A DNA stretch of 64,000 nucleotides from the NCBI RefSeq assembly GCF_003704095.1, contig NW_020845565.1, forward strand, positions 62,001-126,000. Direction: 5' to 3'. Of this stretch, positions 18,615 through 63,738 are shown one piece after another. Both the position numbers and the translations under genes were made by a program. The notes below the pieces were generated by a model that saw only the letters and a list, made by a program, of their open reading frames with translations, did not search any database and was not told where the DNA came from. How positions within the stretch are numbered: position 1 is the first letter of the stretch; each line of letters begins with the position of its first letter. Origin of the DNA: Pocillopora damicornis (taxonomy: Eukaryota).

Positions 18615-20331
18615 GGGAAATTATTTAGCACACTTGAAACAAGAAATAAGTAACTGGCTGTAACCTGCAGCTGTTGGGTCTACAGAGAGCCCCCCTCCAA
18701 AAAAAAAATTCCCATTAACCTCTGCACAAAACAGGGCACATAGAACATGGAACTAACTATAGACTGAAGGCTTCTAGAATCTTAATATGTTGTAAGCCAG
18801 GGAAAATGAAGGGACAATTTTTCTTATACGGTATGCTGAAAGCCACTTTAAAAACACAAAGTTAAGTTGCAGGCAACTTTAAAAAATTATTACCTTCCCA
18901 GTTTCTTATTCAAAGAGTCATATTCAGACTTGCAAATGGCAATGCCATGTTTTACACAGCTAACTTTGCCCTGCATTATATTATGCTGGCTTTCTCTTAA
19001 TCTTTTAATGACATTCTTGACATTAATCCTCTCCTATCAGCATCTTCNNNNNNNNNNNNNNNNNNNNNNNNNNNNNNNNNNNNNNNNNNNNNNNNNNNNN
19101 NNNNNNNNNNNNNNNNNNNNNNNNNNNNNNNNNNNNNNNNNNNNNNNNNNNNNNNNNNNNNNNNNNNNNNNNNNNNNNNNNCAGAAAGGAAAGAACCATA
19201 AAATTCCAGAAAGGAAGTTGGTCACAGCGCATATAATAAAATGGTTCAAAACCAAAATATACCACAAAGGAAATATTGGTCACCGAGCATACACAATAGT
19301 GGTTCAAAACCATTTAAAACCTAGGATGTGCCATTAAATTTTTTAAAGAGGAGCTTTGTGAAAACAAGGACATCAGTAAGAAGAAACAGTTACATACACA
19401 TAATTGTTATTAGTCACCACAACGAGTGGGTCATGTTCCTTGTAAATATTTTCAGGAAAAGAGTAGGTTGTGACTGAATATTTATAATTAGGACTTTATT
19501 TACTAGGTAATACTATTTAACAACAACCCAAAAGCCAACATTTCAATTTTGAATATTTCAAGGGCTTTTGGTAAAGAATCTTTGATCAGACTTTGATGGT
19601 TATATGTAGTTTTAAAATGTTTCCATTTATAGCTTTTGTGTGTCAAGTGTCATGATCAAAATTTATTTTCCTGTTATAAATGATGATGCTGTATCTGGTG
19701 ATAAATTATTACAAAATGAAATGTAACTCTAAGTGATATCTTTTTTATGAAAGTAGATGTATTTTTCTTGATGCAACATTATTTATGCTATTAAGTACGT
19801 GTAACTATTTACAATAAACTATTTTAAAACAGTAGATTATTTTTATATATGTGCTATAAAAGGCATGGTAAGTACATCTTTATTCTGCTTACAATGTCAA
19901 GTGGTAAATGTTGATACCAAAGAAAAAAAAATAAAAAAAAATAAATTCAGGTTCTGGAATCAGTGCCTGCACGGGCTGTATATCCACTGACCCAAGTAAG
20001 TGGGAACCTCTTGCTTTCTGCATCTTTTGATAACAGATGTGAAAGTTGGGACATTGGCAAGTCAGAACAGCTGTTATACAGGCAGGACTATATATTACTG
20101 TCAATGGTACACAAGCAAGTGAACTACAAAAATACTGTTTGAAAATTTTATTATCACTGTGAATTAATCAGTATACAGAGAAGAAATCAGGCCCAGTCTT
20201 GGTTGCAAGACATTCCAGTTACACAGCTCTTGTTCAAAGACAACCTGGGAAAGAAGATAAAAAGATCACAAGTGCAGTGAATCCCATTTTGGCAAAGTTA
20301 ACAGAGTTAGGAAGTGTGATTTTAATAGAAG

Positions 20332-20410
20332 AAAGCCTCAGTATTAATGTAGTCTTCAGAAGTAAATATCAGTGGATTATGACTGAATATATTAAGTCAT
20401 CACTGGCTTT
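20332..20410 (-). ncRNA. Box C/D snoRNA, 28S guide TTCAGTCATAATCC (family not recognised)
   Basis: AAAGCC-A-GTGATGA...TTCAGTCATAATCC-A-CTGA(D')...CTGAAGA(C')...CTGA-GGCTTT. Perfect 6-bp terminal stem and 14-nt complementarity to the conserved 28S segment GGATTATGACTGAA. Confidence 0.88.
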
Positions 20411-20808
20411 CAACTGGGGGTTTGAACACTGGGCATTATCTTCCAAACTAAGGATAATACCATCATGATCCACAACCTTTTCCATGACATTTTTTCGCTG
20501 TTTTCCATTGTAAACAATCAGGGCTTGGCTGAAAATACTGCAAAAATGATTATTTACTCAATATATTTCTCACCTTGCTAAATGTATTCTGAGAAAATTA
20601 TTGTCCATCTGTTCCCATGATTTCCATGGCAGAATCAAATTTGATGAACCTAGAAAAATATGAATACAACTTTCATTTTCCTTTTATTTTTCTTTTTGAC
20701 CAAAGCCCCCTTTACAATAGAACTTGAACTCTAAGAGAGGCAACTGCTCTGGTTTTCCACAAACTTTTAGTCTTCAGGATATGCAAACACAATGCAAATA
20801 CAATAATT

Positions 20809-21262
20809 CAGGGCGTGAAATTGATTTTTTTTCTGATAGCCACTTGGCTCCTAGATTATTCAAAGTGGTAGCCAATTAAAAAAAAGTTGGTTGTCATTTT
20901 CAAAGTCAAACAAACCCTTTTTTTTACACTGTCATCGTTCTAGAAATTAAGTTAGGGAAAAGATCTTTAACGTACTACAAAGTGGACAATAGAATGGATG
21001 ATATGCAATGTTTAAGCTCGCCTAAATCCATCCTAAATCTAGTTATCAATTGAGATGCATGTGCTGTGTTTTGGAAACAAACTTAACGAGGAAGTTTGCT
21101 GCGGATTTATCTTTGCAAATCTTTTTAATTTACTATATCTCTAAGTAAGGTTATGATAAAACATTCTACTTGCCAATTTGGCAACTAATTTTCAGGATTT
21201 GGTTGCCAAAGTAAAAAAATTTGTCGCATTGGCGCCTGTATTAGGTGCAATTTCACGCCCTG
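20809..21262. mobile_element. Non-autonomous DNA transposon (hAT-like MITE, 454 bp)
   Basis: Perfect 15-bp TIRs CAGGGCGTGAAATTG / CAATTTCACGCCCTG, flanked by the direct repeat TAATT. Confidence 0.8.
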
Positions 21263-21450
21263 TAATTACCTTGTAAACTAAAGGAGCATAACACTTGATC
21301 CCAAATCACAACCTACATGTACAACATCAGTTATTTGATGAGACATAATGAGAAAATACCTCACTATCACATGGAAATAGAATTAAAAATCAACAAGTAA
21401 TCATGATTGACAACTTCTCCATTAAGGCTTCTCTGGGTCACCAGAATGCT

Positions 21451-21529
21451 AGTTCAGCAATCAACCACTTTGCCATCCTGCATATCTGTAGCATGCCTTA
21501 GTTGATCATTGACTTCCCACATCACAAAC
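21451..21529 (-). ncRNA. Possible degenerate/orphan box C/D snoRNA
   Basis: C-like GTGATGT or ATGATCA, internal CAGA (D') and terminal CTGA with a short AGT/ACT stem. Sits alone in a host-gene intron like its neighbours. No convincing target. Confidence 0.35.
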
Positions 21530-21707
21530 ATATCATGTTTGATCTCTTATAATATTCAAACATACCAATTTGCAAGATTGTAACCAGAGAAGGATCTATC
21601 ATTGAACCTAAGAACTCTAATCTGTTGTTGTCAAAGTTTCAACTACAGTAATTGGTGCATTTTAACCTTTGTGCCTTATAGAACATCCCTGAAACAGTCT
21701 CTACAAA

Positions 21708-21784
21708 GTGGCCTCAGAAATTTTGGTGATATTTATCATCAGCTATATTCAAGAGTAGCAAATACTTTATGCATCATTGGCCAC
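21708..21784 (-). ncRNA. SNORD76: Box C/D snoRNA, U76/SNORD76-like
   Basis: GTGGCC-A-ATGATGC...TATTTGCTACT-C-TTGA(D')...CTGATGA(C')...CTGA-GGCCAC. Guide is complementary to 28S AGTAGCAAATA, in the register I recall for human U76. Confidence 0.85.
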
Positions 21785-22124
21785 ATCCATGATTGACAAA
21801 CATCAAAATAAATACATCTTGTTAAAAATTTCAATTAAATCACAGGACCTGTAGAATCACTACCATCAATTTTTTTTTTCAAAATCAAAGCACTTAATAA
21901 TTAATTGATGAAAATTTTCAGATATACCAGGAATGAAAAGGGGAATCAATTAGCAATAAAATTTCACTTACCATGACAGTGCCTCAACTTCTGATCTTTA
22001 ACCTGCCTGCTTTAAACCACTGGTATTCTAAACATCCAGGACAAAAAGGAAGAACAAGTGGTTAAAAAAATACAAATTAAAAAACCTTGTGTACAATTAA
22101 AGCCACAGAGAGGAGTTTTTAAGT

Positions 22125-22514
22125 TTAACCCTTAACTGTTTTCCCAACATTTCCTGAGGTGCTGATTAGGAGAATTTGTTTGACAATCAAGAGCTCCTTT
22201 AGCCGGCTATCATTTCCTTTATTCTTAGGACCTTAACCCTTTAATCCCTAGGAGTGACTAGCATTTAATTTCTCCTTACAATATCACTACTGAATCACAC
22301 ATCAGTGTTAAGAGAATAGAGGAAATGATCACCAACTGCAGAAACTCTTGATTGTTAGACAAATCCTCCTTGTCAGCACCTTGGTAAATGTACAGATAAC
22401 TGTATGGAGAATATGAATACTGATGTTAGGGTATTAAGGGTTAATGTTGGATTCCAAGATGATACTGTGAGGAGAAGTTAAAAGCCAGTCATTCTCAGGG
22501 GTTGAAGGCTTAAA
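22125..22514. mobile_element. Nested pair of TTAA-MITEs (inner copy 22233-22444 inserted in an oppositely oriented outer copy)
   Basis: Inner element TTAACCCT...AGGGTTAA. The flanks on both sides continue as the reverse complement of the same family. Confidence 0.8.
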
Positions 22515-22563
22515 GATCATGACATGTACCAAACAATTTGGAAACAGGATACCAAATACAAGA

Positions 22564-22647
22564 GGTGCATCAGGCAAAGCCAGATTTTCTAATCAAGTCA
22601 CAGAGTGACTTTATTATGTCCCTATTCTGGAGGTCATCACTTGCACC
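22564..22647 (-). ncRNA. Box C/D snoRNA, U74/SNORD74-like
   Basis: GGTGCA-A-GTGATGA...ATAGGGACA...CTGA-TGCACC with a 6-bp stem. ATAGGGACA is complementary to 28S TGTCCCTAT (U74 target region). The D' box is non-canonical. Confidence 0.7.
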
Positions 22648-22801
22648 AGACTCAACAATATAAGTTGTTGTCACATGTTGATCATGCTTACCTCACCTCA
22701 AAAACCTTGCTTGGTTAGGTCTTGGCAGTGTACCTAAGATAAGTACCCCATTGTTAGACAAAGAAAAGGAATTTCAACTTTTTCAGTTAAACCTTTTTGG
22801 T

Positions 22802-22867
22802 GGTTTCAGATAGGGGCGAAGTTTATCGTCACCATCAATCAGCTGAACTATGAACTCATCACAAACC
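22802..22867 (-). ncRNA. SNORD80: Box C/D snoRNA, U80/SNORD80-like (yeast snR60 family), double guide
   Basis: GGTTT-GTGATGA-GTT-CATAGTTCA-G-CTGA(D')...GTGACGA(C')...TTCGCCCCTAT-CTGA-AACC. Guides are complementary to 28S TGAACTATG and ATAGGGGCGAA. Confidence 0.92.
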
Positions 22868-23180
22868 ACACCAAGTAATGCAACAGCTTGAAAACTTCCT
22901 TAAAAACATTCAAGGCCAGCCTCTCAGAGGAGCAAGGCAAGAAAATCTATGATCACTGATGACTTGTAGCAGAGACAACTGTATTATTATTTTATAATTT
23001 GACTTTACCTCACCTCATTACAAACACAAATAGGAACCACAAAAATAAAAGCTGTGCAAATTTCTTATGCCATTCACTCCCTGAAACAAAAACAATTAGC
23101 TTCAATTAGAATGAGACATGCAGTTGCTTGTTAGACACCAGAAAGAAACTTGGAAGTTTTTTCAATCAGACCTTAGGGGC

Positions 23181-23246
23181 GGTTTCATATAGGGGGGAGA
23201 ATTATCATCATCAGCAATCGGCTGAACTATGAACTCATCACAAACC
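23181..23246 (-). ncRNA. Second U80-like snoRNA copy with a degenerate D-box guide
   Basis: 5' half matches 22802-22867 (GTGATGAGTTCATAGTTCAG, D' CCGA). The 3' guide has changed to TCTCCCCCCTAT and the D box to ATGA. Confidence 0.8.
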
Positions 23247-23793
23247 ACATTAGGTAAGGCAAAAACTTGTAGACTTCTTTGAGTATGAGGAAGGCCAGCC
23301 TCTTACAGGAGCAAGTTAAGAGAAAATCTAAGATCAAAAATAACTAAATCACTTTGTTGAAAACAGAGAGCCTTATTTACAGAGATTTAACCCTTTACGC
23401 ACTAACATTAGTAGTTATATTTTCCCCACTGTTCACTACACATTTCTAATAGTACTGACTAGGAGAATTTGCCTGACAATCAGGAGCTTCTTAAAGTTGT
23501 GATCATTTCCTTTATTTACATGACCTTTGCATTTGATATAAAGGAGAAATTAGCAGCCATCACTCTTAAGAGATTAAAAGATTAAATATCATTTAGATGT
23601 AATTTGCATGTTTTTGGATCAAATTACCACCTACCCCAAAAGAAAACCACACCAAGCTTTGCAAGTTTCTCCATTCAAAAGCTCCCTGAAACAAAAAGAA
23701 TAGCAGATTTAATTAGGATGTGCATGTACCACATTCAAGAACAGGGTTAGGCATGTTAACTACATGATTCTAACCCCTTGTTATCACAGACAC

Positions 23794-23863
23794 AGTGTCA
23801 GATAGAGCTAATGTCAACCTCATTACAAAAATGTTCAGTTGAACTATGCAGTCATCACACACC
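23794..23863 (-). ncRNA. Box C/D snoRNA combining a U77-type D' guide and a U44-type D guide
   Basis: GTGATGA-CT-GCATAGTTCA-A-CTGA(D')...ATGAGG(C')...ATTAGCTCTA-T-CTGA-CAC. Complementary to 28S TGAACTATGC and 18S TAGAGCTAAT. Confidence 0.88.
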
Positions 23864-24289
23864 AGTCATCAATCAGAGCTCTCTTAAAGAATGAGAAGGG
23901 GAATACTTGATTATCTACATGTAGTAGAGCATATGCAATCTTGAATGACAAAAATTAACGTATCTATTTCTATCAATAGTCTACTGAGTCTGATAATTGA
24001 TGACACTCACTTTGTTCAAGGTAAATTGAGAGTAAGAATCCAGGGCAGCTTTTCTAGCATGATGTGACGATGAAAACAACGATGACAGCACACCCAGTAA
24101 AATCTACCCTCAAATCTTGTCGGACACATCCTGCATTGGCTCATGAAATGCACCACTGACCTTGGACATTGAAACATACTTAATATAAGTGTATGAACAC
24201 CTGCCCTAAACAGAAATAATTTAATTCAAAATTCTCTGTGACCTGAGCAGTCTTAACCCTTTGGCTCCCAAGATCTCCCCTCTAGCTTC

Positions 24290-24333
24290 TAAGGTACCTA
24301 AGGTAAGGTACCTAAGGTAAGGTACCTAAGGTA
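24290..24333. repeat. Short tandem repeat (TAAGGTACCTAAGG)x~3 inside a degenerate MITE
   Basis: taaggtacctaagg-taaggtacctaagg-taaggtacctaagg is read directly from the sequence. Confidence 0.8.
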
Positions 24334-24429
24334 TGGATATTATAGGGAGAAGTTCCATGTTAATCACTTCTGAGAGTTGAAGGGTTGAAAAAGGTTAAGT
24401 CAGCTCTTGCACTTTCAGACTGTGTAAGA

Positions 24430-24509
24430 GTGCCTCAGCGATCTTGGTGGGAAAAGTTGTCATCACATCTCAATGATCAACTAGCAAATATTGAAATCAT
24501 CATTGGCAC
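24430..24509 (-). ncRNA. SNORD24: Box C/D snoRNA, U24/SNORD24, double guide
   Basis: GTGCC-A-ATGATGA...AATATTTGCTA-G-TTGA(D')...GTGATGA(C')...CCACCAAGATC-G-CTGA-GGCAC. Both guides are complementary to 28S GATCTTGGTGGTAGTAGCAAATATT, as in U24. Confidence 0.92.
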
Positions 24510-24745
24510 AAGAAACACTGTCAATACCAATGAATCACACACACTTGAAAAACACAACAATGGTAATTTTAACTCTACCCCAAAAACTAATTTGAATCCA
24601 ATATTTGAAAACTTCTTACCGGTTTGCCTTTCTCTGAACTGTTATTCACTTTGACCTTTCTCTGTAAAGTAGAGAAACGACCGAATCAGCACAATTTCTT
24701 TTCAATCACTTTTGTAACCATGAAAAATATTTAACAAAGTTATCA

Positions 24746-24825
24746 TGCATCAGGCCTATCGATCACACATCACAAAGCTTCCGATTTCAAAGCCTTCTGT
24801 GTCATAGGTTATTTCATCAGGTGCA
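24746..24825 (-). ncRNA. Box C/D snoRNA, 28S guide GATCGATAGGC (family not recognised)
   Basis: TGCA-C-CTGATGA...GTGATGT(C')...GATCGATAGGC-CTGA-TGCA. 11-nt complement to the non-vertebrate 28S motif GCCTATCGATC, ~88 nt upstream of a 3' splice site. Confidence 0.8.
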
Positions 24826-25621
24826 CATAACAGATACTGGGGTATTCTCATTACTAAGTAGCATGAAAAACAGATTAGGGACCAGTTGTTGTTTATCCCC
24901 TGGTGTGAAGGGGGTGGGGGTCTNNNNNNNNNNNNNNNNNNNNNNNNNNNNNNNNNNNNNNNNNNNNNNNNNNNNNNNNNNNNNNNNNNNNNNNNNNNNN
25001 NNNNNNNNNNNNNNNNNNNNNNNNNNNNNNNNNNNNNNNNNNNNNNNNNNNNNNNACTGAAGTTCAAGATAACTGAAATTTTTGCTAGGAACTCTTTTTC
25101 CATTTTCTCTTCAAGCAGAAGAAGATTAAGAGGGAAGGAATCCTAATATATTCCAACTTCCTGACTTGTCAAATCATACAGTAGCCAGCTTTATAGAAGT
25201 ATAGGGATACTTTCAGCAAATCTAAATATAATAACACTTACTGACACCTGACTCACATGCCCAATTTTTTCATTTGATTAGGGATGGTTCAATTTTGGAG
25301 TGTGTTATTTTGCTGAATTTTATACTGCTGGAATTGATTTTTGCAGATCAAGGACTGTTTGCATGAGATAGATTGTCTGCAAAAACTGAAACCCGCTTAA
25401 TGGATATGCTTCACCATGTCATAGTCTTGCAACAGTGGTACGACATGTAATGCACAAATTAACTGTCTTTGCTACTAAAAATAGCTCATTTAATCAAAGT
25501 ATTAGAACTTACCTTTTAGGAAGAGTTGTCTGGAGTTTTCACCTAATAGGATAAAGTATGTATTTCAAATTTCAAAGAGTAAAAAAACTAAAGTGGGGCT
25601 GTTTTTAGAAGGACAGAAAAA

Positions 25622-25706
25622 GTGTACCTTCAGTTAACACAGTCATGATTCTCTTCACTGACGCACTAAGAGAGATTCCCATTTAACAAGTTCATCACTG
25701 GTACAC
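25622..25706 (-). ncRNA. SNORD79: Box C/D snoRNA, U79/SNORD79-like
   Basis: GTGTACC-A-GTGATGA...ATGGGAATCTC-T-CTTA(D')...GTGAAGA(C')...CTGA-A-GGTACAC with a 7-bp stem. Guide GGGAATCTC is complementary to 28S GAGATTCCC. Confidence 0.85.
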
Positions 25707-26705
25707 AGTCAACTCACTGTTCTCGCTTGATGCCGTGATTGTTTTCATTCTATCACAGTTATCACCACAATCTCAATGATCTTTCCATCTGGTTCTTAGT
25801 TATCATTGGGAAAGAGTTTCATGATTATGGCGAACAATACTTGAGAGAGTTCATTTACCTTTGAAAACGACTGTTTAAGATAAACGAAATGGTCAACTTC
25901 GTACCCTGCATTTCATTTAATCAATCGTGATACCACGTGCTTTTGGTCTAATGTGCTCATTAACGGGACAATCTACACTGAAACTTTTTTCAATTTAGGT
26001 AACTACAAAAGACAGTTCAAATAAAAAATTTTATACACCTTTAGCAACAATGACATCAATCAACTTATAACGGCTTCAATATATAGTACCTTGCGTCGGT
26101 TATCAATAGGGGAGCTGGAGCGCCATCTTGGAAACGACCTTGAGACTTTTAAGTTTCACCCCATTTAAAAATGGGGCGAAACAGCGCGTAGTATGAGTCT
26201 ACGCTTTTCTAACGAGCAGTTGAGGTCTTGAACAGATATCACGCACAAAAGTAAGCAATATTTTAAAGCAGTTCACTACATCTACTTGTTGCCATTCACC
26301 CTCAAGTCGTACCTTACAACCTCGTGGGCCGCGCTTTGTACGTTAAACCTCGTTTCCACACATCACTTATCATCGTCCCGGTGAACAACGAATTTTACCG
26401 GAAAAAGCCGAAGATTCATCGTAGAAAAATGATCTTACTGTTAATATTTCCTTATCTTCCTTGAAAAAGAATTCTATCACATTCGCCCCGAGAAATTTTA
26501 TTTTATTTGAAAATCACGCATGTTTCGTTTGAAGTGAGACAAAATAAAGCTATTTGATGAACATGCAATTCGTTTTTCAGTTTGAACGTGACTTGTGAGT
26601 CATTTTGGGGGTTCAGGGAAACCGGAAGTAAGCTGTGGCAAACTCTTGCTTTGACACGACAACCGAACTTCATCCGAGCAAAATGACGAAACTCTATGGC
26701 GTGGA

Positions 26706-26757
26706 CCAATCAGAATAGGCCACCAGGAAGCAGCTTGGCCAATCAGTGAGGGCCACG
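26706..26757 (+). promoter_or_regulatory. Two ER stress response elements (ERSE, CCAAT-N9-CCACG)
   Basis: CCAAT-cagaatagg-CCACC (26706-26724, one mismatch) and CCAAT-cagtgaggg-CCACG (26739-26757, perfect), ~120 bp upstream of the BiP ATG. Confidence 0.9.
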
Positions 26758-26877
26758 CGTGATGGCGAGCGAAATATCAACCGGCTCGAGTCTTCCTTGT
26801 CAATAATTTTGTGTAGTTTTCTGAGAGTTTGAACTGTATCAGAGTTGTCGGAAGAAAAATTCAACTAGATTCCAAAG

Positions 26878-30635
<3,758 letters not shown>

Positions 30636-31914: not shown

Positions 31915-34900
31915 TCAAACCAGTTCAAGAACCTGCAAAAAATAAAAAAAAGTAAAAAATTAAAAAAAAAAGCAACGCTGCAAATGAGCCTTTAAAAATA
32001 ACTCTGCATTTTTCTTGAGGTACGTAACCACTTACAGCAACCTACGAACGAGAATAAACTCTGCGTTTGGTTGTTTGAGCGATTTTTAACCATCCATTAT
32101 CTAGAAGTTATTAAAATGGAACTTCTCCCCACAAGATCGACACATTTAACAAATAACAGGTGATGAGGGTTTAGATACTCGTCGCTTAGATGCTCCCTAA
32201 ATATTGAATTTATAGGAACATGTTGAGCATTTCTAAGCCGGATAATTACTTATCACATCAAGGTTCAAAAGCGGAGGACAGCCAAGAAAAAAGAAGAAAC
32301 GGGCTGGAAGAGGTAATATAGCAAAAAGAAAAGCGCCATAGATCACGGCTCGTTAACAAATGCCACCGTACCTTAATTGTTCCTTGACTATTTGCGGCTA
32401 CAACTACATTGGATCCCTGTTAAGAAAGCGACAAAAAGGCATATTAATGTGCACCTCGTACGATTAAAAATACGATTGGCTAGGTAAGGCCGCCGCCAGC
32501 CTCGTTTCTAGGTTTAGAAGTACCCTCAGATCGAGGCCGCGGGTCACTAGTCATCCGTACGCGTGCTTGCCGGCGCTGCGTGACCGGAAATTCGGTCCCT
32601 TGAAAAACTACATCAGTAATGTTGCTGCTTATTCCCCAGATTGACTGTGCTCTTCAAAAAAATTCAGTAATCTTTACAATGGTTCACTGCTCACTTGAAT
32701 TCTTGTTCTTAGAAAGTCAACTACTTCAATCTGCCCTAGTGGAATAAAAACTTTTTCGCTAACTTCTTGTGGGTTAAATTTCTACCCCTTTGCCTTTACA
32801 CTTTGAAGTACCTTATATCTTAAGTATTTTTGATGCTGAAATAACCTGCCGGTAGTACTCTCTAGGTCATTGTCTTAAGACAAAGATTCACTTACGGTTC
32901 TCCAGCAAACCGCGCTCACAAATTCATTCGCATCGTCTTCTTTCTTATCTTTCTCCTACAAAACCGTAAAGCAACGAAATACCTAAGCAGATGTAGCAAT
33001 GATCAACTGAACAGTGGTTGTTATATAGACCATGCGCGTAAAGGATAATGTCGGATCAATGTCAATATCTGAGCAACTGCGCACCTACCCCTCCCCTAAT
33101 CCAACTAGGGAAGGGGTAGTTGCGCAATAGTTTAGGTTTGATTCGTAAGCTGCTTTCTCGCCCAGTGCAGATGACCTAAATTCAGCCAATACTCTTGAAG
33201 AGATTTTCAGTCTAGTACAAACAAACTGGCAAATCAGCACAAAATGTGACGAGGGAACCAATGGGTTGTCAGATCCACAACATTTAACTGCCAGAAGTGC
33301 GGGAAAATACAGGGAGCAAATCGTGATGCGTTTTAGCAAATCGTGATGCNNNNNNNNNNNNNNNNNNNNNNNNNNNNNNNNNNNNNNNNNNNNNNNNNNN
33401 NNNNNNNNNNNNNNNNNNNNNNNNNNNNNNNNNNNNNNNNNNNNNNNNNCACTTACGCAGAGACAATTTCTTCTGTGTTGATAAATTTTGTATATGATAC
33501 AGCCTTCCTATGGCCTTTGAAGACTGTTATTGGCTTGGTTGTGTTTCGTAGATCATAATAATGGACGCAGTGATCTGTGAAGAGAAACTTCAAAGGTTAT
33601 GAAGGGAATATCTAGCCCGAGTACTGTCAAGAGTGCAGGGTTTTCGGTAACATTAGGAAGTACCGGATGCAGTGGTTCAGCTGGCATGTCCCCCGGGAAA
33701 TTTGTACAATTGGACTTTCTTAAATGCAACTTCCTGCGTTCCCTGAGATGAAGTACAAATGAAAAGTGAGCAATACTGATTCAGACAGATGCTCTCTGAT
33801 CAAAGGTCAGGGTTAGCTGTCGTCGAATTTGTCTGGTCAGTGATAGCTGGTACGGAAGGGGGAAAGGGATGAGGAATGATGAGTTATGATTTTATTATAC
33901 ATGTATATGACATGAATTATCTCTATCGTTTCGATTGTATGTATTACATAACTAAGTGAGTAAAATAAGGGTCAAGTCTTTCTTTGTTTAATAAATGGAA
34001 AAAACGATTTTCACTCTTGGTGTGTGAACTATCAGACGTTACAAGTCAAACAACCGGGCGTTGCGTCCGGTGTCCGGCCTGAAACGAAACCCCTGAGAGT
34101 GAGCCTGCTTGTCTTGTTTGCACTTTAGAGATTTGATCCAATAAAATGTTGTGTTCTGAACTTGAGTAAACCTTTTATTCTAGGCAAGTTTAACCTGCTG
34201 GTGGTAGAAATAGAAGGGAAGGTTGAGGGCTTTGAACTGAGCCTACTGAAAAATGTTAGGCATAACTTATCTGACCCTACAGAAGGGTACCTTGTGAATG
34301 TAGTTTAAATTCTTAGGAAAAGGTTTCCGGGCTGGGCCCAGTTGTTCAAAGGGGGCATAACGCTATCCAACGGATAAATCGCTATGCAGTGGATAAGTGT
34401 TCACAAAACGTACTGCGCTATCCACTGGATAGACATTTATCCAGTGGATAGCGTTATCCATCTTTCGAACAACTGGGGCCAGATGGATACTGTACAAACT
34501 ACATACCTGCAGAACCGAAGGATAGGTGACATCTACTTTNNNNNNNNNNNNNNNNNNNNNNNNNNNNNNNNNNNNNNNNNNNNNNNNNNNNNNNNNNNNN
34601 NNNNNNNNNNNNNNNNNNNNNNNNNNNNNNNNNNNNNNNCGCAAAACTGGCAAGGGGTACCTGAAAAGATCTGGTCTTTGATCCAGTGAAAGCATCCCAC
34701 AGAGTCACTGTGCCTTCATAATCACTGCTGGCAAGTAAACCTTTGTGATACGAGCTCCAACAGATCGAACTGTGAAACAAGCAAACAAAAAAAGTACATG
34801 AAATTTCTTGACCAACAAAGCAGCTAATATTGCACTAGTTTCAAAAAACCCAAAACAAAAAACAAAACAAAACAGATGCAAGACCAAGAGAAAGCAAAAA

Positions 34901-37900
34901 TTCTTTCTGCATATTTTTCTGTTCTTAATTCTAAGAGAGACATGGCTGGATTGAAACTGCTCATCCAAGGGCACAAATTTAATGTGTATCAACTTCAAAT
35001 TCTTCACCTCACCTGATTTTGGAATTGCACACCATTTCATTCACAGGACAATGAATATCCACCACATCTCTTATCACCATTCCATACTCAAACACCTGAT
35101 GTACCAAAAGAGAATATAAAAAGGTTTGATAGATAAGCAGTACTTATCATTATATGAGGTGTCACATCTTGTGAAAGTTAAATTTGAAAATGAGATTTCA
35201 ATGAGTGATGTGATGTCATAACGTAAGGTAAGGGGATTGAAGGTGAAAACCTACACATGCATTACAGGGAATTTGTAGGTGTAAATAAAAGTGCCAGCAT
35301 GAGCATACAAGATGATCCCAACTTGGCCTGCTAGAGATTGCCACTTTAATCCCAGCGAAAAATCCCTTGAAAGTCAAAGCTCAATTCTTGAACTTCACTG
35401 ATAGAGTTCTTCTGTTTCAGGAAGAAAAAGTTTTCAAAAAGATTTTTGAAGAGCAAGGGTTTCATATTCATACTGGGTTCTGTGAGGGTTATGAGGCTCA
35501 GATACAAAGATCCCCCTGAATTGCTGACTGCAAAAGATACTCATCAAAAGATGAGAGATAACAAAAAGAAGGGTTCTTTGCTATAATGACTATTTCTGAA
35601 ATTCTAAATGTACTAAAATAAGCCAGAAATAAAATAAAGTGTGATAAGAGTACCTTGATTTTCTTTGTAACCCCAGCAATGGCAAAGTAGTCAAAATCAC
35701 GGTCAAATTCAATGCTGTATGTTTGTGGAGAGAATAGAATTATTGAAAAATATATATGTACATGTATATACAAACTTTAACTACAGATGATTTCAAGAAA
35801 CATGGAAAGGCATTTAGAAAGAAACAATAAAACAAATTAGAATTTCATACTAGATGTAGGAAAGTTACAATCTATTCATGGAAGCATTTCAAAATATCTT
35901 GTTTCTTTTTTGATAGTGACAATAATAACAACTGAAATGGGAAGACTGGGGTCACTAGTAAAGGCACCTTTAATGTTTTACCATCATTTGCTGACAAATA
36001 CATCTTAGGAAACAAACCTTGATACTATGCTTGAGCTACTATAGATGTCAGTGGCATAACTTAGTGTTGCCAGGCAACGAAAACCACTGAACTTTGTAAA
36101 CTTGGCTAGACTTTCTGTGAAATAATCCAGGGCATCTGAGGTTCCCGCATCACCTGGAAACATTCAGAAATTCAATACCAGCAGTGCAGTCTCATCAACT
36201 AGGACACAAGTGAAATACAACTGGGAAGGAATTGCAGTTTACAGATGTACAAGAGAACCCCGCTAATTCGAACTCAGTTAACTCAAACCCCCTGCAAACT
36301 TGAACAAGATCTGATTTCCCTTGACCCAATTTTTCAGTTATTTACTACCAACTCACCCAAACAATTTTTTGTTTTCCTTGGGAGTTTGAGTTGGCAGGGT
36401 TCTACTGTATGTGTTTTTGTGGATACCGCTGGTTCCTATAAATTTTTTTTTATGCGAAGAGAAGCTGTTTAAGAGTAAAGTACTTCACCCAAGAACACCC
36501 ACAATGGCCAAATCTCAGCTTAGGGTTAGGTCTCGCAAACTGGAGTTCAGAGTGCTAACCATTGTGCCCCTATGGTATGGTATGTGGCTGCAAATACATC
36601 AAATTTCACTTTCTCACTTGGTAAATCTCCCTGCCTAATGGAAAAGTAGCATCTCTCTAGATCATCAAAGTGTTGGTGAATTCTTTTCCTTCTTGACGCT
36701 AAACTGGTGCTGCACCAAAGGTGTTTTGCTCCGTGCTGGCTTCCATTAAACCCATCTTGAGCCCCCTCTGTTTGATCGCATGATTCATCATGACTGCAAG
36801 TGGACAGGTATTGCATTACTTTACACACACTTATAAATAAACACTTTGGTTCAATTAATTTTTTTTCTTGCTTCCCAATGTTTCAAAAAAGTTCAATTAA
36901 ATATTTTATACACAAAAATAAATATTAAACTAGTTTAAAAAATTTAAAAGCAGGAGAGGAAATTTACCACTTAACAGATTAATTTAATATTATGAAATGT
37001 TACTGCAAGTTTCAATCACATGTACATTCTAAAGTTTAGAGCTAAACATATGAGTTTGTTTTAAACCTTACTCAATCATCATTGCAACAGCAAATTACAG
37101 GAGAGACAAGAAAATGAATTAAGATCATTTAGTCAGTATGCAAGACCTTTTAAACCTACAGATGCAGTGCATATGTTTTTCAAGAGTTCCATGCATGATT
37201 AATGCAGCCTTTAATGATATTTCTACAATTCTACAGGTTCAATGTTACTGGCAGCTACTATAAAATACTCAACATTTACCAACAGTCAATAGTAAAACCT
37301 CTATAAATAGTTTGTCACCTAGTTGAAGGTTCCATATCTGAACCCACTGCCACTGGGGCATTTTTAGCTGTCGGTGTGGTAGGTACAGCATGATCCTGAA
37401 GGAAATAAACAGTTTATTCATATCCTGCTCCTACATGTCAGCAATGTTTTTTTGGTTATCTTGTCCTGAATGAAGTATGTCATTAATGTTTCACTACTTT
37501 TCCATAGAGATCAGTTGATATTCAAAAGATAATCGTCCACACACACAAAAAAAACAATTTTGACACATACACAAGCCTTGCTTAATTACTTCAAATTGTA
37601 AATGTACAAGTGTGTGTATTGTAGCAGTTTTCTTAACCTTACAAATACCTCTTACTCTTTTGCAAAAATCTGACCCTTCTTTGGGTCATTTACACCATAC
37701 TAACTGTTTGTGGAAACGAGAACCACATACCACTTCACCAGCCATAAGTCTCTCAGCACCAGGGAGGAGAGTTAAGGGAGCTGGTTTTGAATATTGCCTG
37801 TTGTGACTTGCTATCATTTCCTGAAAGATTGTAGAGTAATTATTATAAGCCTATGAACACCAGTCTATTGATATCAAGTTACTGCTGTCAGTAAATTTCT

Positions 37901-40900
37901 TATCTGTATGCTTCACCAAAACCTTTTGCATTTATACAGCAGTAGTAATGTGGGTTAATAATTGACAAACAAAAAAAACAAACAACATTTGCAATTTCAC
38001 CCTGAGAGTAGATTCTTTCCCCCTCTATGGAGTTCTCCCCTAAAACCTGTTACAACTACTTCAATCTGTTCTGAACAACAGACCCAAACTTAGAGGTGCA
38101 CTTTCACTGTGTACCAAACATGGGAAATAAGCTGAACTCATGTTTCTCTTACTGAAACTCTCTTCATGTCTTCATCAATTAGTTTGACTTCTCGGGTAAG
38201 CTGATCAAGTTGCTATATTTCAAAGGAAAAAAATAGAAAAACTCAATAAGGTTGGGCTAATAATTTGTCTAACAGTAGATGCACAAACCAAGCATTTTAA
38301 CTTCTGAATGATGTTAATGATTATAAATTTTTTTTAACAAACTATACCATTGAATGCTCCGACAAACATCTTCATGTGAATGTACATATAATTTGACTGC
38401 ATGTCATGGATGGCAGTACCATACCTCTTGCTTGTGTCTCTTTACTTGTGAGAGGAAATCTTTCAGCAACTCATGTTGTATTGCTTGGCTATCCTAATAG
38501 TTACATTAAACAAAAGAACTTCAATGCAATCTACATTACATGATCACAAAGAGGCACTCTGTTTTCTGTCAGGTGGTTTTAGAAGGTCCCCCACCAACGA
38601 GGAAAAGAAGGGGCAAGGGAAAGGCTGTGAGAAAATTTTGTCTTTGAGGATGCAAATTAACAGACAGTTACTTGTATTGACTAAATTGGCACCTGTCCCT
38701 GAATAAACTTCCCCTTTGTCAGCCAAATTTTAAAATTGGTGCCATCAAGTCAATTGACACCAGCTTTACATATTCAAACCATCCTTTTTATGACCAATTT
38801 AATCTCAGAAATATAAATAGGTGTACCAACTCTGAAACTATTCCAATTTAAGCATTGCTTTTATATTAAACTACAATTTTGTAGTTTTTTTTACACAAAA
38901 AATGATCATACCTCAAAAAAAAAAAATTCCCCCCCCCCACTCCCTCCTGTCATTTCCTACTTCTTAAATACATTTCCTGACCACTACTGTAGTCTGAGAA
39001 TTTAGATCATTTTACACTTACTGCTTCTAGCATTTGTTTCTTCAGTGTCAAAACTTCCAGCAAATAATTGACATCTGTAACAGGAAAGGTAACAAAAGTC
39101 TCAGAGAGGCATCTTCACGATGAACATAGGGATACAAGTTATCTACCAAGAAGTGGATCTGGGCCATAACGCTGATAAAAAAATTATGATTTTATTTCAT
39201 AGCTTGCCTCCAGCACTGAGAACCAAACTTAAAGCATAGAAGAAAAAAGAAAACAAAAAGTGTCCTACACAGAATTTCATAAGAAATTTTACCCGCTAAG
39301 TCCCATTCATGTTGTCCTGCCAAAAGTTCCTGCAGTCCACTTCCTGCCTCATGTAGCTTTGTAAATAAAAAAAAATTCACCAAACAGATAATGGGATTAC
39401 TGAAACTTATTAGGTAGAGGTTATCTTGATCCAAAATCAAAGTCTTGTAACTAATTTAAAAGGAATTGTGGAGCAGCTAGTAAGGAGAATTTACAATCAG
39501 ATCTTGAGAGTTACAGTGTTAAGGAGCTGTCANNNNNNNNNNACCTGAGACTCCAGAACCATCTTGCTCTTTTTTTGTCCGGTTCTTTCTTTAACTTTTT
39601 GTACCAATTCATTTACTAGGATTAGCAGAAAACAAAATACATGATACATATATTGCACCTCTATAGAGCAAAAAAAAAAAAGGAAAATCAAGTACAACCA
39701 CAATAAGTAAAAATACTCCTTCCAGTTATAAAGAAGATATCAAAATATCCCAAGCACAAGTAACTACAGTCACACGGATAATGACGGGGTGACCAGGTCA
39801 TACAGGTTCCACAGAATGGGATCAAAAGTGATGATAAGATGCTATTTTCAACCGTTATTGGTCTCCTAATGTACAGTTTCTTCAAAATCGTGCTAAAAAT
39901 GCATTGCATCTTCATTGCTTCACATTAACAAAATGACAACTGATCACTATGTACAGGATGACCACTTAGCACACTGCAGTTTAAAAGGAGTTTGACTTTA
40001 TTAACTGTAGTTTTCTCAAAATACTTACATAGAAAGTTAGGAAAGATTTGATCTGGCTTGTCTATGATGTAGTTACATTTAGGACAGCGATTGCTTTCCT
40101 CCAAACTCCTTGTGATGCACTGATAACTAAAGGGTAAAAGAGACATGAGGGTAGTTTTGCATAAATGTTGCCACATTCAGCAACAAGCTACAGTAAGAAT
40201 ATTCACAAGAATAAATTAAATGATCACTAAATATAATGAAGCTCTTGATTGTTGAACAAATTCTACTTGTCAGCACCTTAAGAATTATATACAGAATAGT
40301 ATCAAGAATATGCAGACTGATATTAGGGCATAAAGGGTTAAAATGTGCCCAGACTCAAAAAGATTCTTAATTGTGAGGGTGTATAAACAGGGCACATGCA
40401 GTAGGCTGATTAACCCTATATCAATGATAGTGGATAGCATACCTAAACTGGGCAAGACACAAATTTTACCATTTACTACCCCTATGTGTATGTTAATTGA
40501 TCTTGGTTGTCATGAGGAGGTATCCCAGCTAGGATCATAGTTATAAAAATTAATGTGATTTCATGATTTGTATACAATAGCTAAATGGATTACAGATGAT
40601 TTTAGGAGTTAGAAACACTTCTCAAAGATATCATCCTGGATTAAGATCATGTTACTTTACAGACTGGGTTTTATTCCTTGATAACCACCAGATAACTTGG
40701 AAACAACTACTGGGTTGTATTGATTGGCTGCACTCTTCTTGTCTGACCATTGTGCTGTAGTTTACACATACATAGACGGTCTAACCACAATTATCTAGAT
40801 TATTTGATTATCTAGACTCACTCTCTGGTTCCATTTTTTCAGCAATACTAATTAGGCACATATAAGATCTGTAACAACTTCTCCCCATGAAACAAAGCAA

Positions 40901-42395
40901 ATGTACTTAAACAATGTGGATGCTATTCTAATGATGAAGCTTCAAATAATGATAGAATTAGCAATGCTGATCAATCACCCAGTCAATCTTTATTCATTTA
41001 CAATTGATATGAATAACTCAGAGTCAGGACAAGGTCAAGGTCAGTAATAGTTCACAAACATGGTTATTGCAATAATCCAATTAAAGTACACTGGTTAATA
41101 GGAGAGAACAATTTGTTCAGGCCAGAAGGTTAATGATGAATGCATTCAAGAGGATTTGCACATGTAGGAAATCCTGTAATAGGATTATAGTGTCTGAGAA
41201 AGAGATTGTTGGAATCATATTAAAGGATCAGCTGTTCAAGTCCAACTATCAAACTTGCTATTGTGTGTAATTTTTTATTCACTGCAAGGGACAAAAAGAA
41301 TTTGTTCCACTTTGTCCTAATGGTTTGGGACACAAATTTATACCAATTACAATTTATGCAGCCAGACACAGGGAAAAACTAACTTGAGAAAGAAATGATT
41401 TTTGATCAAGCAGTATCAAATAGAACTGTAAATGTAATGTATGTGTATCTTTAACCTCACATGTCCTTGCAACCGATCACTCAGATTTTTAGGAATGAAC
41501 TGTGCTTGTGCATGTATTTATGTCAGGTAAAGGTAAGATTTTTTGCACAGCCCTGTACTATTGTAAAACAAAGCTGCGGTCCCATGATGACCTAATGTTT
41601 ACCCAATTGTTTTCTTTATCCAAGAACTGCATGCATTATGAAGTACAGGGTTGTGCAGAAATCTTACCTATGTAAATCCTTTATCTCATGACCCACAGCT
41701 ACATGTCCACAAGCAACTGACCTTCACCAAATGTCTTGCCGCATTGTAATTCATTCAAGCATAAATGGAATTTTGAACTTGAAAAGGCTGAATTTTATGG
41801 AATTTTTTTTAACCCTATCAGTGCTGAAACAAATACTAGTCGTCATTGCTGGTGGGACTACCCTGGCGTGCATGACAAAGTTTACATATACAAATGAATT
41901 GGCATGGAAAGCTCAAAGACATCTAACTATGCAAAAAATTTAGGGCTTAACTGTGAGACAATCTCAGGTGATGTGCACACAACGAGCCACTAGGGCATTC
42001 TGATATTCAAAATTCTAAGAAAATAAATCCTTACCAAAAGGTATGTCCACATTTTGTCATGAAAGCTTCATCGATGGTGTCAAAACAGATCGGACTGTAG
42101 AAGAAAAACAAAAACAGATAAGCTAATTTGTACCACAGAGCAATTAGACTGGTTTTAAATCACGCAACATTCACTGGGAAAAAAATGCACGAAGGCAAAG
42201 ATTACTGACCCATTATGAGCAGGAAAACGTATCTAATCAATAATTTTGCTCTTACCAAACGAAATCGCTATTTTTATCGCTGAAAGAGTTCATAATTCCA
42301 CCATAAACGGGAGGATGCGGCCTCTTCCGACGACGTCCTGCTCGCCCCTGACTCGTCTGAGCAGATGTTGAATTCGAGGACGACATTTGAGCCAT
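31915..42395 (-). CDS. COP1: E3 ubiquitin ligase COP1 (RING, coiled-coil, WD40); ~20 visible exons, some hidden in gaps
   Basis: Start [13 protein letters not shown]...[66 protein letters not shown]. Further motifs [59 protein letters not shown] and [13 protein letters not shown]. Ends [12 protein letters not shown]. Confidence 0.96.
34332..34482. mobile_element. ~150 bp palindromic MITE
   Basis: CTGGGCCCAGTTGTTC...GAACAACTGGGGCCAG termini, with internal TATCCACTGGATA palindromes. Confidence 0.8.
41531..41669. repeat. Small inverted-repeat element (MITE-like) in COP1 intron 2
   Basis: AGGTAAGATTTTTTGCACAGCCCTGTACT (41531) / AGTACAGGGTTGTGCAGAAATCTTACCT (41642), ~28-bp imperfect inverted repeats. 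Confidence 0.7.
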
Positions 42396-44727
42396 AACAG
42401 TCGGGATTGTGGACGTAAGAAATCAAAAATGTTTTCTGAGAAGTATTGGTGTCATCTTCGGGGGAGCTTCCTGCGATATTTAACGTCAAGCCAAGCGAAT
42501 GAGCACAGGAGAACAGAGAAAAAATATTGCTCTGAAAGTCACGCTTGATCTGCGCACGCGTATTAAGAGCCCGGGAAATACGGCTTACCGGATCTCAGAC
42601 CCAGGGCTCCCGCGTGATATACTGAGATTCGTGTTTGCTTACTGGCTGAGTAACGGTCGATCCTGAAACATTTCGCGTTCGCTTCCAAAACTGAAATTAA
42701 ATTACGTGAAATTTAAATGTTTATTATACCTGTTATGAAATCGCTGGTAATCCTCGAAATCCAACTGGGTCTTAGTAGTGCCATTTTTTAGGAATTACAC
42801 AATTTTTTCTCTAAATCATCAAGCCATCAAGGAAACATTAAAAGAAGTCAAATCCCTAGCAATCACCATTACAAATCTATTTTTATCATAAACAAGTAAT
42901 CACATATTTCTTAAATGGTCTTAAATTTGCTTAAAGCACAAGTCCCGCGTGTTTTTCTCTTGATTTGCCTAAGCTTAGTTATACCAAACTGTACTCTTCA
43001 ACATTTGATAACTTATCTTTATGTTTCAGATATCAAATAAATCTCGTACTTGGGCAAAATGACAACGCAAACTTTCATACAACTTCAGAACAATGTTTCC
43101 TCTATTTTAAATCTTTATGTTGTAAAAACTTCAGGTTTTGTGTTGTTCTAATTGAGGTGCACTTCTTATTTCACAGCTGTTAATAAACATGTGTTCTCTG
43201 CTTCTTTCCCTGAAATGTGGCCGTCATGATTGGAATTCCCTTGAAACATATTCTCCTTAAAAATTGACTTTTTTATGCTAATAATTGGGACAAGTGAAAC
43301 AGGATCAATACCATATTGAACATTTTAACCCATACAGGTGTACTTGGACTGATATTGTTCCTGTATTAATAACGGTTTTGATCTTAAAAGTAATTTATAA
43401 GGAATTAAAGGTGACAGTGAGCTATTTAGGCAAGCTATCATTTACAATTACATTTATACCCTGACCTAACACTTAAATCGGCACCTCTAAGCAAGTCTGG
43501 AGGGAAATAACTGAAAGACTATGGGAGAAGCTCATTGTTCCTTCCTCCCAAAGATTTTCTTTCATGTTTCTGATTCCAGTTTTTTTATTTGCAACAATAG
43601 CAGTCATTCTTTCTATTTACCACCACTTTAAAGAAACAAAGGATAAGGAGATATGATTTAGTCAGCATTGGAGGAAGTGTTGCCATGACAATGACATAAA
43701 ACTCATGGTAACAGGGCACCCTAAAACTCAGAGAAAGTATACCTGGTGTGAAAAAAGCTCTTACTTCAGTAGAGATTATACTTAAAACTTTCAGCACACT
43801 TCATCAGACAAATGATTGTCTAATGAACTTTAATATACAACATGAACACAATCAAAAACTTCTTTACTGCAATATTTTTCCATTTTTGTTTATTTTCTTT
43901 AGACTAATTACAAGTAAGGATTGTATCAGAATCTATGTCCTGTTTTAAAACACAATTACACAATAATACAATATAATACAAACATTAAAGGGTATTTATG
44001 CAACACAAAACTTGAGTGAGAACTAAAAGCCAGAAATAAGTACAAAATTCAGCCTTGCATTCCCATGTATGCAATTTACAAATCTCCGTAGGAGAACTTA
44101 GTTTCTGAAATTGCCTCCTAAATGATAAGTGACACTTCTTAACAAAGAAGTAGCTTGTGTAGTTGCTTAATTTGGTTCTGACAACCTGAACTTGTGTCAC
44201 CTAATCATAACAAGGTTTGCACATGCTCAGATGTTTGACCACCATGTTTCAGGTCACTGTTCAAAGTAAGCACACTAGCTACTGCATCCTATTTCTCTCT
44301 AGCCCTTTGACTGGCTTGGGAAACTCAAAAAGAAAAGATGACTATCAATTGAGTAAAACGTAAGCCAAGGATACAGTTAAAGTGGTGCTGACAACAGTAG
44401 CTCTACACAAAAAGGGGAGAAATGGTTTGTCACTACTGGCAGCAAATCTGGCCATAACTATCAACCCTTCACCCCCAAAATCAGAAAGAGAAGTCTCCCT
44501 TATACCAGCTGTAAATTCCTTGTGAATGAGTGATAAGAATTGGGTGTATTATCCAGAGAAAACTTTTGAGGTTATATGAGTTTGTCTATTCTGATCACCT
44601 GCTTTCTGGAAGTATTGATTTTGTAAAAGGGACGTTACATGGAAGTAAGTGTTAAGGTTTGAAAAGTAATACTATATTTCCTTAGCACAACAGCATTGCA
44701 GAAACTCAGGTGCTTGCATTTCTCCTG

Positions 44728-50834
<6,107 letters not shown>

Positions 50835-52314: not shown

Positions 52315-63738
<11,424 letters not shown>

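Follow-up and report, generated by a model that had tools for sequence, protein, structure and literature searches.

Gene content of the window

We analysed a stretch of 64,000 nucleotides (nt) from the coral Pocillopora damicornis (assembly GCF_003704095.1, contig NW_020845565.1, positions 62,001 to 126,000 of the forward strand); this whole stretch is referred to as the window, and all positions are counted from its first letter. Its minus strand carries a spliced gene between approximately 20130 and 26117, and each of the nine introns of this gene contains exactly one box C/D small nucleolar RNA (snoRNA) or a remnant of one. The gene is situated between a cluster of TNF-receptor genes and its divergent neighbour BiP/HSP70, beside which COP1, WDR5 and PI4KB are found in a row. 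A preliminary description of the window, made from the sequence letters without database searches, had read the interval as a non-coding snoRNA host and had proposed its orthology with the vertebrate gene GAS5. Here we describe the transcript, its snoRNAs and their conservation, and then weigh the relationship to GAS5. Coordinates of all features are collected in Table 1.

Table 1. Features of the snoRNA host locus and its surroundings in the window.
Feature	Position	Strand	Remarks
Non-coding snoRNA host gene	20130-26117	-	start ~26117 and poly(A) site ~20130, both approximate
Exon 1	26090-26117	-	at least 28 nt; joint 25540 to 26088 (cut +2) in four runs; start approximate
Exon 2	25513-25542	-	joints in four runs
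Exon 3	24620-24661	-	RNA-contig joints
Exon 4	24011-24160	-	largest, 150 nt; RNA-contig joints
Exon 5	23635-23685	-	RNA-contig joints
Exon 6	23014-23080	-	RNA-contig joints
Exon 7	22697-22733	-	RNA-contig joints
Exon 8	21972-22027	-	RNA-contig joints
Exon 9	20574-20649	-	joint 20647 to 21970 in one run; variant in another run with 18 extra letters
Exon 10	20130-20244	-	joint 20242 to 20572 in three runs; AATAAA at 20147-20152 read from the sequence
U79-type box C/D snoRNA	25622-25706	-	7-bp stem; 79 nt to 3' splice site; SNORD79 26.5 bits, below threshold
Box C/D snoRNA without Rfam family	24746-24825	-	C box CTGATGA, D box CTGA, 4-6 bp stem
SNORD24 (U24)	24430-24509	-	both 12-nt guides intact; Rfam 57.4 bits at 24431-24508
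snR60/U77-type dual-guide snoRNA	23793-23864	-	snR60_Z15 38.8 bits, below threshold
Degenerate snR60/U80 paralogue	23177-23250	-	D' box CCGA, D box ATGA, D guide mutated; ceN111 38.4 bits, snR60 34.7 bits
snR60/U80-type snoRNA with both guides	22800-22869	-	Rfam at 22798-22871: ceN111 51.8 bits, snR60_Z15 45.9 bits
U74-type box C/D snoRNA	22564-22647	-	6-bp stem; D' box degenerate; weak Rfam matches (SNORD82, snoR44_J54)
U24-like snoRNA with predicted U76 phase	21708-21784	-	SNORD24 60.3 bits at 21710-21782; D guide diverged
Box C/D snoRNA	20331-20411	-	7-bp stem; best Rfam match SNORD91, 33.6 bits, below threshold
Assembly gap	24924-25055		inside intron 2; spanned by joint 24661 to 25513 in four of four runs
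BiP/HSP70 exons	27224-30635	+	Pfam HSP70 E 4.9e-43 and 4.8e-114; divergent neighbour
COP1	32261-42422	-	in the window
WDR5	45272-49604	-	in the window
PI4KB	52315-52839	+	in the window

Structure of the host transcript

Contigs assembled from four RNA runs of four different studies, covering poly(A)/oligo-dT and random-primed material, were mapped onto positions 20141-26140. They define a main minus-strand isoform of 10 exons and 9 GT-AG introns with a spliced length of approximately 652 nt, in which the exons are only 28-150 nt long. At all nine joints the skipped part reads CT...AC on the plus strand, corresponding to GT..AG on the minus strand, and all boundaries check out. All four runs contain six of the joints. 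A seventh is present in three runs and has an offset variant in the fourth, an eighth is present in three runs, and the ninth (20647 to 21970) comes from one run only.

The contigs of three of the four runs terminate at 26117. A CTCCCCT run, a possible 5' terminal oligopyrimidine (5'TOP) start, begins at 26114, and a TTAAAAG motif is found approximately 30 nt upstream; the 3' end of the host is placed by the AATAAA signal. Open reading frames (ORFs) beginning with ATG in the spliced model encode no more than 42, 41 and 30 amino acids, and each frame is interrupted by 10-12 stop codons. In six of the nine introns, the snoRNA lies 66-107 nt from the 3' splice site.

Consistent with the preliminary description, the locus thus produces a spliced minus-strand transcript with no ORF longer than 42 amino acids; the approximately 13 exons that it had counted are reduced to 10 in the main isoform. 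Its figure of about 10 intronic snoRNAs becomes nine, all real by sequence, and the one that it had called tentative found no support (see below).

The assembly gap inside intron 2 is crossed by a single collinear RNA contig of 935 nt, which has 221 letters of its own where the assembly has 132 N. This contig, together with the spanning joint, implies that the sequence runs on from one gap flank to the other without a change of orientation; the true length of the gap probably exceeds its 132 N. No additional conserved snoRNA was found at the gap position in the orthologous loci of other assemblies.

Two further observations concern the RNA contigs themselves. In run X6, a joint from 20642 to 21970 has 18 letters between its sides that are present nowhere in the window, and these could represent an unassembled micro-exon or a strain difference. 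Bins 20741-21340, 22141-22540, 23341-23540 and 24141-24540 attract hundreds of RNA contigs of 90-95% likeness with very high summed depth; these bins, located in introns 3, 5, 7 and 8, appear to be repeats, probably transposon fragments.

Intronic box C/D snoRNAs and their predicted rRNA targets

All nine snoRNAs are encoded on the minus strand within 20130-26136, and in eight of them C and D boxes are accompanied by a terminal stem of 4-7 bp. A plain scan for these three elements recovered seven, and a relaxed scan added 24744-24827. The ninth, at 23177-23250, was detected solely as a sub-threshold Rfam match and looks like a decaying paralogue. We compared the window with Rfam at its gathering scores, namely 41 for SNORD24 (RF00069) and snosnR60_Z15 (RF00309), 43 for ceN111 (RF01615), 47 for SNORD79 (RF00152), 40 for SNORD44 (RF00287) and 51 for SNORD91. 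Three matches reached them: SNORD24 twice and ceN111/snR60_Z15 once. A permissive scan added, below threshold, snR60/ceN111 matches at 23790-23867 and 23177-23250, as well as SNORD79, SNORD91 and other families at 25622-25707 and 20325-20414. Because Rfam listed no match to SNORD74, SNORD76, SNORD77 or SNORD80, even in searches of 90-100 nt, the assignments to U74, U76, U77 and U80 rest on guide phase and target spacing.

Rfam large- and small-subunit (LSU/SSU) searches of the assembly returned degenerate fragments of ribosomal RNA (rRNA) genes only, and the assembly lacks the 28S string of highest conservation, which was derived from the U24 guides. The short rRNA-like fragments, at C3123:14998-15959 and C1013:20040-20586, are the only ones found. 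The true ribosomal DNA (rDNA) array thus appears to be missing from the assembly, and we therefore checked targets on the rDNA of other eukaryotes, using 116 eukaryotic rDNA contigs obtained in a metagenome scan with a pattern based on both U24 guides.

In eight of the nine snoRNAs, a stretch of 9-14 nt that ends beside a D or D' box is complementary to conserved eukaryotic rRNA, and snoRNA ten-mers complementary to many of the rDNA contigs fall directly upstream of these boxes. The D' guide of the U79 type pairs with 28S GAGA*TTCCCA (match in 31 rDNA loci), the D guide of 24746-24825 with 28S GGCCTA*TCGATC (19 loci), and the 14-nt D' guide of 20331-20411 with GGAT*TATGACTGAA in the 28S 3' domain (eight loci). 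For the U74 type, the D' guide ATAGGGACA pairs with 28S TGTC*CCTAT, on the 3' side of the U79 site. The two guides of SNORD24 match 80 and 116 of the 116 rDNA loci, and the D guide of 22800-22869 matches 80. In 23793-23864, the D' guide pairs with the equivalent of 28S A1521 and the D guide with 18S TAGA*GCTAAT (U44 type, TAGAGCTAAT), with matches in 55 and 18 loci, respectively. The match of SNORD44 itself is local and limited to 15 nt of the guide and D box (12.9 bits; model positions 45-59). Judging from these letters, 23793-23864 is a putative case of U44 guide function carried on an snR60-type body.

The guide of 21708-21784 has a match in 115 of the 116 rDNA loci. Relative to U24, the D' box TTGA of this snoRNA is displaced onward by 2 nt. 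This shifts the predicted methylation to an A located 2 nt on the 5' side of the second U24 site, corresponding to U76 specificity. In total, eight sites are predicted in 28S and one in 18S, plus one repeated 28S site.

On four near-complete rDNA units, the U79 and U74 sites are 11 nt apart, the two snR60 sites 91 nt and the two U24 sites 14 nt. These values equal the spacings of human A3809/C3820, A1521/G1612 and C2338/C2352, respectively, where A3809 and G1612, like A2350 and 18S A166, are what we take to be the human positions. The numbers of the U24 sites are given in a previous study (PMC3412847), and the contexts of human C3820 (U74) and A1521 (U77/U80) are confirmed by published primers (PMC6856654). 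Six of the ten predicted sites coincide with those of the human GAS5 snoRNAs U44, U74, U76, U77/U80 and U79, and two more are the U24 sites.

Together with the SNORD79 score of a distant locus (see below), the complementarities, spacings and human contexts uphold the guide types named in the preliminary description (U79, U24, U77/U44, U80, U74 and U76). The Rfam comparison that it had suggested gave a mixed outcome, with the three matches at threshold and the other six snoRNAs below it.

Similar to SNORD24 in intron 2 of human RPL7A and intron 3 of sponge RPL5 (PMC3412847), the coral 24430-24509 possesses both 12-nt guides; the coral host, however, is non-coding, and it carries a second copy, 21708-21784, in which the shifted D' box predicts the U76 specificity. 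The coral 22800-22869 likewise shares both guides, with sites 91 nt apart, with yeast snR60, plant Z15 and nematode ceN111, but in the coral it is encoded in introns and has three copies, one with its second guide swapped for an 18S (U44-type) guide and one decaying. The D guides of 23793-23864 (18S) and 22800-22869 (28S) occupy the same position in the body and differ by a few substitutions and one indel, which suggests that the U44 specificity may have arisen through drift of the second guide of snR60/U80.

Strong SNORD24 and snR60 matches occur genome-wide only in this cluster. Several other candidates were rejected. Elsewhere in the genome, SNORD79 matches best at C4052 (30.8 bits), where the U79 guide is not present, and a weak SNORD24 match (C1208) is without the U24 guide. 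Within the host gene, 25745-25830 contains an 18S-complementary 10-mer but has degenerate boxes and no conservation, and the tentative snoRNA of the preliminary description (approximately 21450-21540, or 21322-21409) displays neither rRNA complementarity nor conservation.

Conservation of the cluster in other assemblies

Orthologous loci were fetched from other assemblies with the last BiP exon as a handle. Five assemblies, in which this exon is 83-93% identical, have the same eight snoRNA types, representing all but one of the nine, upstream of BiP and opposite to it in strand, and wherever the locus reaches they follow the same order: U79, the 24746-24825 type, U24, the dual A1521/U44 type, U80, U74, U76 and the 20331-20411 type. 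In L130 and L131, just 1-2 kb upstream of BiP is covered. A BiP tree places the five loci and the window in one clade, apart from arthropods and nematodes. No snoRNA cluster was found beside BiP in L132 and L133, two animal contigs with a more distant BiP.

In the alignments, boxes and guides are invariant and the terminal stems contain compensatory changes on both sides, for example GTGGCC/GGCCAC versus GTAACC/GGTTAC in the U76 type. The U79-type guide is identical in all six loci (the window and the five assemblies), and at L129, the most distant of them, the first snoRNA reaches 53.8 bits for SNORD79 and so exceeds the threshold. The guides of 23793-23864 are invariant and that of 22564-22647 is conserved in the six loci, while 24746-24825 is kept at the corresponding position in all five other loci. 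The guide-plus-box string of 21708-21784 is invariant in the four loci where a copy was found (the window, L125, L127 and L129), and L125 and L127 also keep 20331-20411. By BLAST, the loci resemble the window only in the snoRNAs and the BiP 5' region, except that the exons of the host are conserved in the closest locus.

Separately, all five other assemblies conserve, at 73-86%, the stretch 26652-26837 between the start of the host and the first large ORF of BiP, and it may be a BiP 5' exon or promoter sequence common to the divergent pair.

Nature of the host gene

The observed splicing, the arrangement of introns and snoRNAs, the lack of long ORFs, the conservation limited to the snoRNAs and the guide complementarity lead us to conclude with high confidence that RNA polymerase II transcribes the locus into a spliced and polyadenylated RNA that codes for no protein, and that the useful products of this gene are its snoRNA-bearing introns. 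In such a gene, transcription would run away from the BiP promoter region, and the box C/D snoRNA of each intron would be freed after splicing by debranching and subsequent exonucleolytic trimming. Assembled with core proteins of the fibrillarin type, the snoRNAs would then guide 2'-O-methylation to the rRNA nucleotide that pairs with the fifth position upstream of the D or D' box; the spliced exons would be a by-product. By analogy, the host gene would work like vertebrate GAS5 and UHG and the fly Uhg genes.

Alternatively, the exons might encode a small functional peptide, as in protein-coding hosts such as those of ribosomal proteins. The short ATG ORFs of the spliced model could be taken in this sense, and human GAS5 also has a 50-amino-acid ORF (PMC6288135). 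However, the exons are unconserved even between assemblies in which BiP is 89-92% identical and the intronic snoRNAs are conserved, and at least 10 stops interrupt every frame; the joining of the exons into a conserved protein, which the preliminary description had considered, was not seen in the ORFs of the spliced model or in the comparison of assemblies. We regard a coding function as scarcely credible.

It is also conceivable that each snoRNA has a promoter of its own or that a polycistronic precursor yields them, the spliced transcript being incidental read-through from a bidirectional BiP promoter. Independent or polycistronic snoRNA genes are used by plants, yeast and some protists, and the RNA contigs also cover unspliced stretches. 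Against this, all nine introns contain exactly one snoRNA, the spacing to the 3' splice site is canonical in six of them, and five other assemblies share this arrangement, so that this explanation appears very improbable.

Several points weigh against the interpretation as an intron-encoded snoRNA host. The RNA evidence consists of assembled contigs, and transcript start, strand and level go beyond what contigs show. In introns 3, 7 and 8, which overlap the bins of very high contig depth and of which intron 8 is 1322 nt long, a distance of 269-1058 nt separates the snoRNA from the 3' splice site; inserted repeats or alternative exons that are not listed here are the probable cause. Of the nine snoRNAs in the window, six fall short of the Rfam gathering scores, and the rRNA targets come from other eukaryotes, the species' own rDNA being represented by degenerate fragments only. 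From these data we infer the processing pathway, the accumulation of 70-85 nt RNAs, the methylation of the predicted sites and whatever regulation there may be.

Genomic neighbourhood

The adjacency of the host and BiP is kept in the five other assemblies. COP1, whose presence nearby the preliminary description had stated correctly, and a FAM20B-like gene (closest to the FAM20B xylosylkinase, at approximately 26 kb on the same 183-kb contig, C2200) both lie less than 75 kb from the host gene. A tyrosine kinase of the contig was rejected as ABL because it is FN3-linked, and the contig flanks contain no further Rfam family.

In human, COP1 and FAM20B are presumably located at 1q25 within approximately 5 Mb of GAS5, which they flank, while we take PI4KB to be at 1q21 and HSPA5 and WDR5 at 9q33-34. 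On these assumed positions, all five identifiable conserved genes of the contig have human counterparts on 1q21-25 or 9q33-34. These two segments are recognised paralogous regions (PMC1309616).

At L129, a weak Med22 match (1079-1276, plus strand) was observed just past the 3' end of the snoRNA cluster. Human MED22 is, we assume, next to RPL7A, the human U24 host, at 9q34.2.

Relationship to vertebrate GAS5

In vertebrates and flies, non-coding genes that host snoRNAs are a familiar arrangement. Human GAS5, at 1q25.1, is approximately 0.7 kb long with 12 exons and a 5'TOP start, and it hosts ten box C/D snoRNAs, SNORD44, 47 and 74-81 (PMC6288135). Its homologues have been traced across gnathostomes (PMC4408788, PMC2653536); in the literature searched, we found no claim of GAS5 beyond vertebrates and no published description of such a non-coding multi-snoRNA host in cnidarians. 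For early-branching animals, the homology of non-coding hosts was considered virtually impossible to judge in the Trichoplax annotation paper (PMC2655684).

The coral gene resembles vertebrate GAS5 in its tiny exons, in the presence of one C/D snoRNA per intron and short ORFs only, in exons far less conserved than the snoRNAs, and in the guide types U44, U74, U76, U77/U80 and U79. Repeated U80-type copies are a feature of chicken GAS5 as well, and coral neighbours have human orthologues that we place at 1q25. It differs from GAS5 in being head to head with BiP, in the order of its snoRNAs, in lacking the U47, U75, U78 and U81 types, and in carrying three snoRNAs outside the GAS5 set (U24 and two unassigned ones without a GAS5 counterpart). 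Drosophila Uhg1-Uhg8 and mammalian UHG/SNHG1 are likewise spliced non-coding carriers with snoRNAs in their introns (PMC4430873, PMC2653536), but their payloads differ.

One reading of this resemblance is common descent: the coral host and vertebrate GAS5 might both derive from one multi-snoRNA host locus older than the cnidarian-bilaterian split, a proposal that we hold as a tentative one, somewhat short of probable. The ancestral locus could possibly have been situated in a proto-1q25/9q33 region beside COP1, FAM20B and BiP, and its cargo might, with similar reserve, have included at least U44, U74/U79, U76 (with U24) and U77/U80 guides. As a corollary, it is conceivable that 23793-23864 keeps an ancestral dual-guide state that was later split into the vertebrate neighbours U77 and U44.

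The alternative is convergent assembly, in which a host of the cnidarian lineage gathered its snoRNAs by intragenic duplication and transposition, independent of GAS5. The common guide types would then reflect the age of the snoRNA families and duplication in place (U74/U79, U77/U80 and U24/U76). We consider such convergence a serious possibility, although one that also stops a little short of likely.

Three observations speak for common descent and against convergence. The overlap of six in ten target sites has a hypergeometric P of approximately 2e-5 by sites, or approximately 1e-3 when paralogous pairs are counted as single units, that is, by independent family groups, both calculated post hoc. 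The host is close to COP1 and the FAM20B-like gene, whose human orthologues we take to flank GAS5. Finally, A1521 and U44-type guides are combined on one coral snoRNA, and U77 and U44 presumably reside in neighbouring introns of human GAS5.

Other observations favour convergence and count against orthology with GAS5. The coral order (U79, unassigned, U24, U77+U44, U80-degenerate, U80, U74, U76, unassigned) is not collinear with the order that we assume for human GAS5 (U74, 75, 76, 77, 44, 78, 79, 80, 47, 81), and only the U77/U44 neighbourhood recurs. The four missing types were not found by Rfam scans in the window or the 183-kb contig, and no orthologue of the immediate human neighbours of GAS5 was found among the ORFs scanned on this contig. 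The two animal contigs with a more distant BiP are without the cluster. The preliminary description had regarded a scatter of these families over unrelated hosts across intermediate lineages as a sign of convergence, and such a scatter is likely in Drosophila, in which CD27, CD28, CD4, CD52 and CD31, snoRNAs for likely equivalent sites, map to five separate loci. Fly genomes are heavily rearranged. U24 is hosted by RPL5 in sponges and by RPL7A in humans, which indicates host switching over this time span (PMC3412847), and work in chicken identified gas5-like hosts as hotspots of snoRNA gain (PMC2653536).

The orthology put forward in the preliminary description is thus not demonstrated: the shared sites and the linkage to COP1 and the FAM20B-like gene agree with it, whereas the order, the four missing families and the hosts of U24 elsewhere do not. 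The deep-orthology reading nevertheless remains alive and now has positional support.

Implications

As a host gene, the locus is ordinary in kind; it provides a transcript-supported coral case that is conserved in five related assemblies. The cluster represents a natural intermediate for the duplication of dual-guide snoRNAs and the division of their guides, from U24 to U76 and from snR60 to U77, U80 and U44. In the literature searched, homology of non-coding hosts has been traced only within gnathostomes (PMC4408788). With six of ten target sites in common with GAS5 and neighbours derived from one ancestral chromosomal region, the age of a long non-coding RNA gene becomes testable in animal genomes by its cargo and position. 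If true, common descent would place GAS5 first in age among the long non-coding RNA genes that can be traced, with cargo and position as its only recognisable marks.

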